The notes beneath the pieces were generated by a model. The model did no database searches. It was not told the DNA's origin and was given only the letters and a program-made list of their open reading frames with translations. DNA of 44,235 nucleotides from Octopus bimaculoides (lineage: Eukaryota), in contig NC_069000.1 in assembly GCF_001194135.2 (NCBI RefSeq), positions 19,081,015 through 19,125,249 on the forward strand, in the 5' to 3' direction. The position numbers were made by a program, and so were the translations under genes. Every line of letters begins with the position of its first letter. The stretch's first letter is position 1. Shown in pieces: positions 30,635-43,832 of the stretch.

Positions 30635-33553
30635 CACACACACACACAGAAAGCACAACACAGGAGGAACAAAGCATGATGAATACGGTATTAGATACAG
30701 GCTCGAAAAGTTGAAATGAGGTATTGTAATATTTTACATGTTAGTCTTGCATCAGAAAAGAGAGAGAAATATAGGGAGTCAGAAATAGTGAGTGCAGTGA
30801 TAAAAAAAAAAAATTCAGAATAACAGAAGAAGAAGAAGGTCTGAAAACAAGAGAGAAATGTTGTTCTATGGGGGAGTTAGAACAGGGAAATAGTGTAGGC
30901 TATGTGTTGGTGGGGTGCATGAAAGTATATAGATGTGTAGAGGTGTGTAAATTTGGTTGCATTAGTTGTGTGTGATTAAAAGTACTGATGAAGCACTGTA
31001 GAACAGCTGAAAGTAAACAGCATTTTGTGCATGTATATACATAAAGAACAGTATGTAGGAGAGGGAAAACATTTTTTCAGGTGTGTAGCTAAGAGGAAAA
31101 GACTGAAAACAGTTCAAGAAACTGAAAATCCAACACAAAATAAAAGAAATCCTAAGTGTTTGAGATGGTAAAATTCCAAGCATTCCCAGATGAGATTAAA
31201 AGTTGAAAGATGGTAAAAGTCTGAGGAGAAGGAGTAAAAGTCCAAGAAGGTGAAATACCATTGATGCAAGAATATAGGAGTGTGGTCTACTACATGTTAC
31301 TGAAGTAATGGAGAATGGCCAATGGAAGAGAAAAAAAAAGTGACTATTTGTTGTTTTGTTTTTTCGATAGAATGGACAAAAGAGGAAGAAAGTGGCTGAA
31401 TGACATAAACATGGCTGAATGTGTTAATATTAGAAGGAAGTTAAATCAGCAGAAGTCAAGAAGTAGCAACAAGTGGGTGTATCATTTTTTATGGTACAAA
31501 TGGGAACAAGTATGGTCAAAAAGTGTGTGTGTGTGTGTGTGTGCATGTAAAATCTACAAAACAGCAGGTAAATAACTGTATGAAGGGTGTGGAGACAAAG
31601 GAGGGGTATGGTGTAGATGGTGGAGTGAAGTGCAAAGAGGTGGGAGGGGTGGGGCTCAGACTACAGTGGAGAATGGAAGAGAGGAGAGAAGAAGTACAGA
31701 TGTGTAATTCTAAAGCAGACAGAGGAGAATTAAAACCAAAAGATGTTTAAGTTTTTAGAAACTTAGAGGAGCGTGTTGTGCTCCAATGTCCGCTTTGGTA
31801 TGCTTTCTGTGGATGGATGCTCTCTCTTAGTAACTCGGTGCTTTCTATGTGGCACCAGTACTCCTGAGATCACCATGTAACTCACAAGACTTAAGAGGCA
31901 CCTCAACTGAGTGTGAGTATAATAGAGAGGGGAGGTGACATTATGCTAGGTGTTTGAGAGATTAGAATATGATAAACAGATCAGAAACAGGTTCTTGCTG
32001 TAGAAGAGACACCTTGCAGCCCCATGTTATATAAGTGTGGGTTGGCAGTAATTGAGGTGGAGCTGGAAAGAAAGATAGAAATGGTGGTGACAAAGTGTGC
32101 TTTCCATATACTAGAATGTGTGAGGAGTTGAGAAATGGTTATAGATGGGGCGAGAGGTGAATGTAGTGAATGGTAATCAAGGGTGGAGGAGTAGTCGATG
32201 ATAAATAGAAGTTTGGTAAAGGTGATAAGAATCTGTATACAATAATAGCTAGTGCCACACATCGAGTAAAAGAATGCTATGCACATAATGAGAGAAAGAA
32301 TAAGAGAGACAGAAAGAGGAGATGGAGTAAATGACAGAGTATTTATGGGAGAAGCTATGCAAATGAGTAATGAGTAAAAGTTGTTTTGTAGACAAAATAT
32401 AACTGTGATTAACATATTCCTGTTTGAATCTGCTAGAACACATTAAAAATTAATATGTATGTCATTGTTTTGCTTTTATTTGATTTTATTTTAAGGCAAT
32501 AAATATTTTTCTTTTGAAAATTAGTATTCATTTCATGATTTTGTATAAGCATGAAAAAAGTTGATAAAAGTTGAATTACAATTACAGTTATGTATGCCAT
32601 GTTTTATGATGTTACCCACGATTGCAAACATATACTTCCAAAGTTACCTGTTATATGAGAGGAAAATATATGGAGAGATAATGAAAAAAAACAGAAAGGA
32701 AAGAATGTGTAGGGATTAACAGTTCAACATGATGTATGTGTGTGTGTGTATACATATATACACATATTTATATGTATAAACTCATCCCATAAAAAAAATG
32801 CCTGAATATTTGGTAAGAAAGAAAAGATCTCTAAATTACATATTTTATTAAAATTCATTAACACAATATGATTATCGATGTCCTCCTTGCAGCAAATATA
32901 TACTCCTTTATGCTATTTGCGTAAAATTTTGTGGAGTTTGCCAAAAAGAAATTTGGAGAGGGTAGATTCCACTTTTTCATATGTTTTAAGAACTACTCCA
33001 TCAAAGTGATTGCATAAACTCCAAAATAGGCAGTAATCAATGAATAAGAAGGTTGTAGAATTTTTTCCTGGATGAGGTTTTCCATCTTTTCACATGTAAT
33101 CTTTGCTGTTAGAGACTGTGAATTATCTTGATGGATTTGTGTTTCACCGACAAAGGCCTCTTTACCTCCAGAGCCTGTAATTGTTTAGAAACAGCTCAAA
33201 GTGAATCACACCAATATAATTTCATCAAACTCTAACCAACACTTTCTTAGATGGAGGTCTTTTGGAGTTGTTGTTTAGCCATTTCACCTTCACAAAGCTA
33301 TTGTATGCATCACTTAATATTCTTGTAAAAGATCCCTTTTTCATAATAAACTGTCTAAAAATAGTGACAAGTGTACATGAGAGTGTAGAAAAGTACAAAT
33401 GTCAACTTGAGCTGCATGGTTGTGAAATTAAAGGGAATCTATTTTCCCAGTTTAAGCACCTTTTCAAGGTATTGTAGATACTGGTGAATTGTTGAATGAC
33501 TTAAATTAAGCTTCTGGGCTAATTCTTCAACTATAACACACTATTTCAATTAA

Positions 33554-33755
33554 CTATAGAACAAAAAATGGACTATATACCTGTTGTAACTTGGTTATCT
33601 ATAGTCCAATGATATTTTGAAATTACAATTCCTTCTTCAGATCTTATATGCTGGATCTTTATAGCAGAGACTCCAGAAAATAAGATCTGAAGAAGGAATT
33701 CTAATTCCGAAATATCATCGGACTATAGATAACCAAGTTACAACAGGTATATAGT
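33554..33755. mobile_element. Inverted-repeat insertion (probable Penelope-like pLTR remnant) with 13-bp direct-repeat flanks
   Basis: Arms 33571-33647 and 33680-33756 are reverse complements with few mismatches; ctatttcaattaa at 33541-33553 and 33756-33768. Confidence 0.8.
33684..33719 (+). ncRNA. Minimal type I hammerhead ribozyme motif
   Basis: GAT-CTGAAGA-A-GGAATT-CT-AATTCC-GAAA-TAT-C-ATC: intact core, 6-bp stem II, palindromic ATAT stem III, AUC cleavage triplet, 3-bp stem I. Confidence 0.7.
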
Positions 33756-35624
33756 CTATTTCAATTAAGTTCTGACAAAAGCAGGTCCTCGTTAAACTGA
33801 AAAGGATCACCTATTCATGGGACATCTTGTTAAGCTGACTCTCCTTTCCTAAACCTTTCAAACTTTTTTCAACCAGTTCTTTTATTTTAATAGTTTTCCC
33901 CATGAACATCATGAATATTTCGAATTACTTCTGCTGCATTATTGCATTCCGTGAACTCAGAAATGGCCCATGGACATGTCCGTCTTCAGCATAATGGCAT
34001 AATGGCTAATTCATAAATTACTACTTGACAACTGCACAAGGTCAGACTTAAAGATATCAAATTTCAAACATTACTTATGGAATTAATTGATATATATGTT
34101 TGTATGCATATGTGTGGAATAAGGCCAGGATGGAGCTGAGAAAAATATAGTCCAAATGAGGACTCAATGCACGTGTTGGATTGAGGAAATATCTTTATAA
34201 AGAGTAAAAAGCCATATGTAGAGCTTATATTAGCTTAATGCATCAAGCAACAATAATGACTAGACTCAGATCACCAGAAGCATATTATGTGTGCATTTAT
34301 ACATGTCCACAATATGCTAATTAGTTAGATCTGTCTGGTGCTCCATATTTCAATGCAAGCAATCATACAAGCATGCACGTGTGTGTGTGTATTGGTATGT
34401 TTTGGTTAATTTTGACCAATGACAGTATTTTGGCTTATGGTTGGTTCTAATGCTTGTGTGTGTGTGTGTGTGTGTGTGTGTGTGTGTGTGTGTGTGTGTG
34501 TGTTTGTTTTAGTTCCATAGTGGTATTTTATGCTCGGTTGGTTAGTGTGAGTTTGAGGAGGTATATACAGGGTGGGTGTTTATTATGGATGTGCATATAT
34601 GTATGGGAATACAGGTAAGTATGTATTTATNNNNNNNNNNNNNNNNNNNNNNNNNNNNNNNNNNNNNNNNNNNNNNNNNNNNNNNNNNNNNNNNNNNNNN
34701 NNNNNNNNNNNNNNNNNNNNNNNNNNNNNNNNNNNNNNNNNNNNNNNNNNNNNNNNNNNNNNNNNNNNNNNNNNNNNNNNNNNNNNNNNNNNNNNNNNNN
34801 NNNNNNNNNNNNNNNNNNNNNNNNNNNNNNNNNNNNNNNNNNNNNNNNNNNNNNNNNNNNNNNNNNNNNNNNNNNNNNNNNNNNNNNNNNNNNNNNNNNN
34901 NNNNNNNNNNNNNNNNNNNNNNNNNNNNNNNNNNNNNNNNNNNNNNNNNNNNNNNNNNNNNNNNNNNNNNNNNNNNNNNNNNNNNNNNNNNNNNNNNNNN
35001 NNNNNNNNNGGGGGGGGGGGGGAATGTGTGTGTTACAGGATGGTCATTAAAGTATATGTTTAAGGATAGAGAAATTGGTCAATAAATGCATATCTTTTGT
35101 TGTGTATTTATGCATGTGCTAAGTCTATAGGATGTATTCATGTGTTAGTAAGTTTATGTGTGTACATGTGTGGGCTTTGATTTGGTGAGTATATAAGTTA
35201 GTGAAGGTAGTGTTGTGGCCAATGTTGATGTTGTGTGTGTGTGTCTGCAAATATGTCTATGGATCTGTAGAGATGTGTAGATAGTGTCAATCTGTGTGTT
35301 CGCTTGAGTTAACTTGAGTTTAACAGTGTGTGTGCATGCAAATATACATGCATGAAATTGGATATTTAATTGATATATGGATGCATGTGTTTGTGTACAT
35401 ATGGGAATTACTCGCATATATATGCATATACACATTTATTTATATTTTGTGTGGGATAGCAGCAGTGGGAGCATTCATACATTGGGGGTTTGTATTATTA
35501 ATCAAAATATGTCTGTGTGTCTTATGTGCATATATGGTTTGTATATGGATGTGTGTTGTCGTTGTCGTCGTCATTGTCATATCCACTTTTCCATGCACAC
35601 ACGTTTGGGAAAGAATGTACTGAG

Positions 35625-43375: not shown

Positions 43376-43585
43376 TCTGTTTACTTGTCCTGCTTACCAT
43401 TTTTCTCTCTCATTGTTTGCATATTTAACTTGTTTATTTACATATTTCATATTGTTTGCACAGTTGGTGACATCCTGTACCCATATATGCATATATATAT
43501 ATATATAAATTGTATATTGTATAAAGGATCGTAGCTAAGGCCAAAACAATGCAAAGTAAATGCAAGGTAAATCACAAGAAACCAA

Positions 43586-43832
43586 ATATGTGAATTAATG
43601 TAGACTTACCTTGTATTCAATATTTCAGGGTTATGATCCCATTTTCAAGAAAGTGACAACTGTTGCCAATGTGCGTGTGTGTGAGTGTTCGCCAAAAGAG
43701 GCTGATAGAATAAGTACCAGGTTTAAAAAATATAAGTACAAACGCTCACCAGCAACAATCATCAATTTCTTGAAAATTGGGTCATAACTCCGAAATATTG
43801 AATACAAGGTAAGTCTACATTAATTCACATAT
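43586..43832. mobile_element. Inverted-repeat element with ~70-bp arms carrying hammerhead-like motifs and a SINE fragment in the spacer
   Basis: Outer 41 bp of the arms are perfect reverse complements (atatgtgaattaatgtagacttaccttgtattcaatatttc); spacer contains gatagaataagtaccagg (SINE A-like). Confidence 0.8.
43767..43802 (+). ncRNA. Variant hammerhead motif with U3-A8 core (mirror copy on the minus strand in the left arm)
   Basis: TTC-TTGAAAA-T-TGGGT-CATA-ACTCC-GAAA-TAT-T-GAA; consensus of both arms gives stem II GGGGT/ACCCC. Confidence 0.5.

Follow-up and report, generated by a model that had tools for sequence, protein, structure and literature searches.

The DNA considered here, referred to below as the window, is a stretch of 44,235 nt from Octopus bimaculoides (GCF_001194135.2, contig NC_069000.1, 19,081,015-19,125,249 of the forward strand). 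It is AT-rich eukaryotic DNA with six assembly gaps, and it contains three loci with minimal hammerhead ribozyme motifs of type I. One locus has a solo motif (HH2), and the other two are inverted repeats, IR1 and IR3, with one copy of the motif in each arm (HH1-L and HH1-R in IR1, HH3-L and HH3-R in IR3). The five copies and the structures around them are listed in Table 1. We consider it probable, at about 0.8, that the three loci are relics of insertions of Penelope-like elements (PLEs) carrying the PLE type of minimal hammerhead.

Hammerhead motifs at three loci

All three loci have the same layout, in which a short stem I is followed by the core box, one extra nucleotide, a helix II hairpin, GAA, a 4-nt palindrome starting at A15.1, H17 and the return of stem I. 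Written as stem I / core / bulge / helix II / GAA / helix III / H17 / stem I, HH1 on the plus strand reads GAU / CUGAAGA / A / GGAAUUCUAAUUCC / GAA / AUAU / C / AUC. HH2 reads GACAC / CUGAAGA / A / GGCUGGAGGGUAUAUCAGCU / GAA / AUGU / U / GUGUU, its helix II being split as GGCUGG-AGGGUAUA-UCAGCU, and HH3 on the plus strand reads UUC / UUGAAAA / U / UGGGUCAUAACUCC / GAA / AUAU / U / GAA. The catalytic boxes, C3U4G5A6N7G8A9, G12A13A14 and H17, stand in type I order and are exact in HH1-R and HH2. Both HH3 copies have the U3-A8 variant of the core, and HH1-L deviates at G12, where it has A.

A single unpaired nucleotide is present between A9 and G10.1 in all five copies, A in HH1-R, HH1-L and HH2 and U in the two HH3 copies. 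G10.1 is kept in four of the five (HH3-R has U) and its partner is C11.1 or U, the product of CpG decay at that position. The closing pair 10.1-11.1 is G-C in both HH1 copies, G-U in HH2 and HH3-L and a U-C mismatch in HH3-R. Helix II has 5-6 bp in HH1 and HH2. In HH3 it reaches 5 bp only when the pairing base is picked from either arm; HH3-L and HH3-R differ at four helix II positions, and the base taken from one arm or the other gives a perfect GGGGU-CAUA-ACCCC helix II. Helix I has 3-5 bp, with just 3 bp in HH1 and HH3. The helix III palindrome is AUAU in four copies and AUGU in HH2, the latter being self-complementary by way of G-U pairs and one CpG transition away from ACGU. The helices are unrelated among the three loci, which therefore represent distinct families.

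The strict descriptor used to search for such motifs required a stem I of at least 3 bp, CUGANGA, 0-1 extra nucleotides, a helix II of at least 4 bp with a 2-12-nt loop, GAAA, an even palindrome, H17 and stem I. Over the whole window and both strands it finds HH1 and HH2 and nothing else, and it has no match in 300 dinucleotide-preserving shuffles. With decoy cores on the real sequence (1260 distinct permutations), two matches are obtained only for the true core and for two strings that match the same two sites; among 1257 scrambled cores, two decoys have a single match each, equal to 0.0016 per decoy core. When the U3-A8 core is allowed, HH3-L is added, the expectation from shuffles being 0.003 per window, and when one core mismatch is allowed, HH1-L is added. 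Three loci with five copies are far above chance. Membership of the minimal hammerhead class is by the published descriptor and not by Rfam. An alignment of the five hammerheads with MAFFT was not structurally consistent.

A first-pass annotation of the same DNA had claimed four hammerhead motifs, several distinct families among them, and two motifs in outward-facing inverted repeats. Three of the motifs (HH1-R, HH2 and HH3-R) stand as minimal type I hammerheads by descriptor or direct reading, while the fourth, discussed in the last section, fails in its core and stem I; the positions given for the motifs agree with the sequence read directly. The division into families and the outward-facing arrangement were borne out, as was the assignment to PLE-type minimal type I hammerheads with a palindromic helix III, one of them solo and two in head-to-head inverted copies.

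Similar short strings occur 3' of the ribozymes, ACAAGGTAAG at 43803-43812, ACAAGATAAGG at 37473-37483 and ACAACAGGTATA at 33738-33749. They may be a common 3' recognition motif or may be due to chance.

Table 1. Positions of the hammerhead copies, repeat arms and associated features in the window (TSD, target-site duplication; SINE, short interspersed element)
Feature	Position	Strand	Details	Basis
HH1-R, minimal hammerhead	33684-33719	+	core 33687-33693, bulge A 33694, helix II 33695-33708, GAA 33709-33711, AUAU 33712-33715, C17 33716	strict descriptor
HH1-R, predicted cut	between 33716 and 33717	+		
HH1-L, decayed mirror copy of HH1	33608-33643	-	G12->A (CAAAA for CGAAA)	one core mismatch allowed, arm alignment
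HH2, solo minimal hammerhead	37419-37464	+	core 37424-37430, bulge A 37431, helix II 37432-37451, GAA 37452-37454, AUGU 37455-37458, U17 37459	strict descriptor
HH2, predicted cut	between 37459 and 37460	+		
HH3-R, minimal hammerhead	43767-43802	+	U3-A8; core 43770-43776, bulge U 43777, helix II 43778-43791, GAA 43792-43794, AUAU 43795-43798, U17 43799	direct reading
HH3-L, minimal hammerhead	43616-43651	-	U3-A8 core UUGAAAA; G10.1-U11.1 pair, one A-C mismatch in helix II	loose-core descriptor
IR1, left TSD copy	33541-33553	.	CTATTTCAATTAA	perfect 13/13 match to 33756-33768
IR1, 18-nt extension, left end only	33554-33571	-	between TSD and arm; resembles one-sided PLE tail (PMC8557442, PMC3846280, PMC11167929)	arm alignment
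IR1, left arm	33572-33655	-	5'-truncated element copy, sense on minus strand	repeat search, alignment
IR1, right arm	33672-33755	+	ends exactly at right TSD	repeat search, self-BLAST, alignment
IR1, right TSD copy	33756-33768	.	CTATTTCAATTAA	
HH2-family element, minimum extent	37390-37555	+		homology to O. bimaculoides A0A0L8FV75_OCTBM
IR3, left arm	43570-43680	-	well-conserved part ~43583-43668	repeat search, alignment
Fragment of abundant SINE-like repeat between IR3 arms	43654-43732	+		BLAST to 17078-17157, 77.5% over 80 nt, E=7e-12
IR3, right arm	43738-43848	+	well-conserved part ~43742-43835	repeat search, alignment

Structure of the inverted repeats and the solo element

The repeat search delimits IR1 as 33566-33655 / 33672-33761, with 92% complementarity, and IR3 with 83%. 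Each carries a mirror hammerhead on the opposite strand, so that the ribozymes face outward. In IR1 the left copy, read in its own sense, extends 18 nt further 3' than the right copy, and the whole is enclosed in a 13-bp TSD. Head-to-head copies with their 3' ends outward, a short TSD and an optional one-sided extension are the structure described for PLE insertions. A read-through RNA of IR1 is predicted to form a hairpin of -127 kcal/mol in which the ribozyme is buried, with an energy z-score of -22.

The HH2 element adjoins an (AAT)n microsatellite at 37340-37371. The minimum free energy structure of the HH2 46-mer is exactly the hammerhead fold, at -10.1 kcal/mol. A search of 5.8 billion proteins gave a single relative of the reading frame through HH2, A0A0L8FV75_OCTBM, a 51-aa uncharacterized protein of O. 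bimaculoides that is 84% identical. It is probably a translation through an HH2-family element (37390-37599(+) in the window), that is, a mis-annotated repeat and not a gene. When its codons are mapped onto the ribozyme, the core region has only two changes, E13D and E14D, and these coincide with the two positions that are free to vary, N7 and the nucleotide of the bulge. Its amino acids fix C3, G5, A6, G8, A9, A13 and A14; two further changes alter helix III and stem I. Judged from the protein sequence, this relative shows a second copy of the HH2 family, paralogous or orthologous. It is compatible with constraint on the core, one protein-level relative being too little for a test of covariation.

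The arms of IR3 have in common the hammerhead, ~40 nt of 3' sequence and ~28 nt of upstream sequence that is repeat-like. The fragment enclosed between them, which is antisense to the hammerheads, comes from a SINE-like repeat with at least five other copies in the window, at 1838-2065(-), 5377-5569(-), 5637-5721(-), 16986-17192(+) and 41040-41250(+); the alignment of the repeat took in the copies at 1838-2065, 5377-5569, 16986-17192 and 41040-41250. The repeat contains an internal (CA)n/(TA)n microsatellite. ARAGORN found nothing in the window, and the orientation of the SINE-like repeat is thereby unconfirmed. Runs of (TTA)n and (TA)n flank IR3.

In both inverted repeats the differences between the arms are unevenly placed. 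There are four in the 36-nt ribozyme of IR1 compared with none in its 36-nt 3' tail, and four in the 36-nt ribozyme of IR3 compared with none in 43 nt. Six of these eight ribozyme differences are transitions, and three are at CpG (33608-33755, 43616-43835). Arms copied together from one RNA should decay more evenly. CpG accounts for a part only; the arms may instead derive from two different template RNAs, or the structured region may have been copied with errors.

The gaps at 34631-35009 and 41577-42012 are at least 863 nt and at least 267 nt, respectively, from the nearest motif or repeat arm. Thus no motif, repeat arm or part of the observation relies on continuity across a gap. The gaps bear only on the statement that the window has no PLE open reading frame (ORF), as a PLE body could hide in one of them; short-read assemblies are broken by the tandem and inverted structures of PLEs (PMC8557442). 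At the right edge of the first of these two gaps there is a run of 13 G at 35010-35022 with (GT)n on both sides, which resembles a sequencing or scaffolding artefact.

Probable origin as Penelope-like element relics

The minimal hammerheads of PLEs were defined by Cervera & de la Pena (2014, PMC4209133) by an unpaired nucleotide between 9 and 10.1, a G10.1-C11.1 pair and a palindromic 15.2-16.2. Their helix II is longer than the canonical 4 bp and their helix I shorter, the core may be covariant as U3-A8, sequence diversity among the families of one genome is extreme, and most motifs are solo, with pairs lying ~100-700 bp apart on opposite strands (PMC4209133). The octopus motifs share the type I topology, the CUGANGA and GAAA boxes, the unpaired nucleotide between A9 and G10.1, the G10.1-C11.1 pair, the long helix II and the short helix I. 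They also share a helix III reduced to a palindrome of 4 nt, from which they would be expected to act as dimers, the U3-A8 variant, the occurrence as a solo motif or as opposite-strand pairs, and the diversity of helices in one genome. They differ from the published motifs in the 3-bp stem I of HH1 and HH3, in the visible decay of several copies and in having no linked PLE ORF. The deviations from the published features in the closing pair, helix II and the helix III palindrome are explained by decay.

The surroundings of the motifs point in the same direction. PLE insertions show strong 5' truncation, an inverted 5'-truncated copy that yields head-to-head repeats, TSDs of 8-10 bp and a bias for microsatellites, together with an optional tail of 30-40 bp at one end only (PMC8557442, PMC3846280). 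Unrelated sequence is occasionally captured between solo pseudo-long terminal repeats (pLTRs) or pLTR fragments (PMC3846280). A purified PLE protein was able to cut and extend both strands, and its reverse transcription starts at two internal sites whose spacing corresponds to the tail (PMC11167929). The loci described here resemble these insertions (Arkhipova et al. 2013, Craig et al. 2021, Frangieh et al. 2024) in their head-to-head copies, short TSD, one-end extension, captured sequence and nearby microsatellites. Unlike a full PLE, each arm holds just the last 90-110 nt of the element, and the TSD, present at one of the three loci, has 13 bp in IR1 compared with the published 8-10 bp. IR1 and IR3 look like head-to-head 5'-truncated 3' ends of PLEs.

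Following the literature on PLEs, the motif of the source element would lie in the pLTR, a few tens of nucleotides upstream of the start of reverse transcription. Two copies on a longer-than-unit transcript would associate by way of their palindromic helix III (AUAU or A[C/U]GU), giving a double hammerhead, which would cut after H17 and leave a 5'-OH and a 2',3'-cyclic phosphate. For insertion, the anatomy of the loci and the published biochemistry suggest that the protein, with its reverse transcriptase (RT) and GIY-YIG parts, would nick both target strands and prime cDNA from each nick. The copies would mostly be cut short at the 5' end, so as to leave a solo 3' fragment as in HH2 or a pair of such fragments head to head, the 3' ends pointing outward, as in IR1 and IR3. 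The insert would be flanked by a TSD (13 bp in IR1), with an extension at one end (18 nt in IR1), and foreign sequence would sometimes be trapped, such as the repeat fragment in IR3. IR1 would be read most simply as priming from both nicks of one cut staggered by 13 bp, with two alternative start sites; this reading draws on PLE insertion anatomy and on the nicking and extension of both strands and the two RT starts of the purified PLE protein. IR3 could have formed by the same route, its left copy being longer and including sequence derived from the repeat.

The ribozymes at these loci are relics and not working parts. The paired copies are on opposite strands and therefore cannot act as pairs, there is no tandem arrangement, and the copies are decaying. 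The inverted 'cassettes' of the first-pass annotation are for this reason not functional pairs of ribozymes, and read-through of IR1 would give the hairpin mentioned above. The signs of decay are the G12->A change in HH1-L, which should inactivate this copy, the helix II mismatches in both HH3 copies and the CpG->TpG change at C11.1 in HH2 and HH3-L. The C11.1-G12 CpG is intact in HH1-R and HH3-R, has become TpG in HH2 and HH3-L, which leaves a G-U pair, and is CpA in HH1-L, where G12 is lost.

Several results weigh against an origin from PLEs. The hammerhead models of Rfam (release 15, e.g. Hammerhead_1, Hammerhead_3) have no match at gathering threshold in the whole window, and at E<=10 there is none in 11 kb nor in segments of 56 and 66 nt around HH1 and HH2. 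Pattern scans for the motifs in metagenome and viral collections gave 0 matches. HH2 alone among the motifs folds by itself as a hammerhead, and helices I and III are very weak. Such motifs have low activity in vitro, and cleavage is dispensable for insertion in vitro (PMC4209133, PMC6765202, PMC11167929). The extension of IR1 has 18 nt compared with 30-40 for the published PLE tail, and a search for TSDs at IR3 and HH2 found none.

To these points belongs the coding capacity of the window. Among all its ORFs of at least 60 aa, Pfam finds no GIY-YIG domain and no domains that accompany a PLE RT, and tblastn with 121 PLE proteins (Poseidon_Ac and 120 others) finds no PLE remnant in the window, in agreement with the earlier statement that no PLE ORF is visible. 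The same 121 proteins searched against the window plus 21 kb of O. vulgaris gave only generic RT similarity to fragments of long interspersed elements (LINEs). When the protein collection was queried with Poseidon_Ac (PMC11167929), no Octopus PLE was among the matches listed, the 120 being vertebrate, arthropod or unnamed. As the window has no ORF for a PLE RT or GIY-YIG protein, the link to PLEs rests on architecture and literature and not on a linked ORF.

The alternative that survives best is that the loci belong to dedicated non-autonomous families, retrozyme-like or SINE-like, in which a hammerhead is present and mobility is provided in trans by PLE proteins, and are not truncated autonomous PLEs. 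Trans-mobilisation by pLTRs alone is documented in rotifers (PMC3846280), and vertebrate non-LTR retrozymes have been proposed as non-autonomous PLE derivatives (bioRxiv 10.64898/2026.07.22.740005). The octopus loci resemble metazoan non-LTR retrozymes in being non-coding repeats with type I hammerheads, a weak helix III and possible PLE mobilisation (PMC7229834). The second copy of the HH2 family in O. bimaculoides is in keeping with such families, as is the fusion in IR3 of a SINE-like fragment to a hammerhead-bearing 3' module, with repeat-like sequence in both arms. However, retrozymes form head-to-tail tandem arrays, give rise to circular RNAs and have canonical hammerheads with loop-loop contacts (Cervera & de la Pena 2020, PMC7229834), whereas the motifs here are of the minimal type and have no tandem array. 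Repeat search and self-BLAST of the window found no direct-repeat family that contains the motifs, whose copies are limited to the mirror arms in self-BLAST; besides its own mirror copy, each element occurs once in 44 kb. The same picture arises from heavy 5' truncation of autonomous PLEs (PMC8557442, PMC3846280). We regard dedicated non-autonomous families as unlikely, and the terms 'non-autonomous' and 'retrozyme-like' of the first-pass annotation are not retained, as there is no tandem array and the structures match those of ordinary PLE insertions with heavy 5' truncation.

A related and similarly doubtful proposal is that IR3 represents an octopod family of composite non-autonomous elements, in which a piece of the SINE-like repeat would be joined to a PLE 3' module with a hammerhead, the composite being propagated in trans by PLE proteins. 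The Sm-alpha and Sj-alpha elements of Schistosoma (cited in PMC6765202) are comparable to IR3 in that a short interspersed repeat is joined to a type I hammerhead. Compared with those elements, the repeat fragment of IR3 is antisense to the hammerhead and may be mere capture. If the composite reading were true, IR3 would be the equivalent in cephalopods of animal retrozymes and of the hammerhead SINEs known from Schistosoma.

That the inverted repeats are miniature inverted-repeat transposable elements (MITEs) or foldback relics of DNA transposons, with hammerhead-like strings inside them by chance, is very improbable. Near-palindromic elements of 190-280 bp are MITE-like, IR1 forms a long hairpin and mariner-type transposase remnants occur in the window. 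But the shuffles and decoy cores put the number of such strings expected by chance at about zero, against three independent loci, of which HH2 lies outside the inverted repeats, and the published features of PLE hammerheads recur in all copies. The left arm of IR1, moreover, does not abut the TSD, as 18 nt stand between them, and this with a TSD of 13 bp is not the structure of a MITE. A TSD of this length is not known to fit any common superfamily of DNA transposons. Least likely of all is exaptation by the host, with IR1 and IR3 as hairpin precursors of small RNAs or with the ribozyme on a host transcript: the hairpin energy of IR1 and the sub-threshold matches to miRNA precursors at IR1 (MIR5512, 64 bits compared with a gathering score of 139; mir-3914, 31 compared with 97) could be taken for it, but all Rfam matches are far under their gathering scores and reflect the long hairpin only, and the ribozyme copies carry inactivating changes.

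Read as PLE relics, the loci extend the host range of PLE minimal hammerheads to an octopod. This kind of ribozyme has been known since 2014, and what is new is the host and the family members, with no new mechanism. Minimal hammerheads of metazoan PLEs were reportedly also treated by Lunse, Weinberg & Breaker in 2017 (cited in PMC6765202). We found no paper on these motifs in cephalopods, and the host here is an octopod; Octopus has recently active PLE families (PMC13282606). The loci give three examples of PLE insertion anatomy, with a TSD, a one-sided extension, inverted copies and captured sequence, which fit the two-strand priming seen in vitro. They indicate that ribozyme relics can be recognised by reading the sequence alone, although the covariance models of Rfam miss them completely. 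Genome annotation should treat such loci as fragments of PLEs and mask them.

Weak sites and other mobile elements in the window

The fourth motif of the first-pass annotation, at 41273-41310(+), was rejected as a hammerhead. Its core is AUGAUGA, with A at C3, its stem I has 1 bp, and an extra U lies between helix II and G12. A descriptor loosened to accept this site has 0.16 matches per shuffled window and 0.30 per decoy core on the real sequence, and under that descriptor the site is consistent with chance. It is located just beyond the microsatellite of the repeat copy at 41040-41250, and its homology to the body of the SINE-like repeat is not significant. The loose descriptor has a second weak site at 34156-34193(+), in which an AUGAGGA core is followed by a helix II of 5 bp and then by an extra G, GAAA, AUAU and C. 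Like the fourth motif, this site is defective in having A at position 3 and one nucleotide too many on the 3' side of helix II. Two weak matches at once are reached in 4 of 150 decoys; one of the two sites may be a badly decayed relic, and neither can be called individually. The CRISPR-DR25 model of Rfam at 41276-41300(-), with 32.2 bits compared with a gathering score of 36, lies on the AUACC-ACAA-GGUAU hairpin of the fourth motif and was set aside as a chance resemblance in eukaryotic sequence.

The three good loci all lie within the final 10.3 kb of the window (33541-43848), with none in the first 33.5 kb. This clustering could reflect a local grouping near microsatellites, or chance. A scan of a 21-kb piece of an O. 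vulgaris chromosome with the minimal hammerhead descriptor found none.

Mobile-element debris is found at 2121-2663(+), 35871-36500(+), 4818-5272(+) and 43044-43350(+), and consists of two LINE-type RT fragments, a mariner transposase fragment (Transposase_1) and an apparent remnant of the N-terminal helix-turn-helix of mariner. The matches to Pfam are limited to LINE-type RT fragments (2121-2663, with a PHD finger, and 35871-36239) and a mariner transposase fragment. The best relatives of the RT fragment at 2124-2663 are proteins of Octopus vulgaris (68% identity) and O. bimaculoides. Six ORFs of the window were sought in the protein collection by exact match, and none was present. A second type of repeat, starting with (CAT)n-CGTTTAACGTCCGCTTTCCATGCTAGCATGGGTTGGACG, occurs at 39130-39480(+) and 3580-3849(-), and we take it to be a common Octopus repeat.

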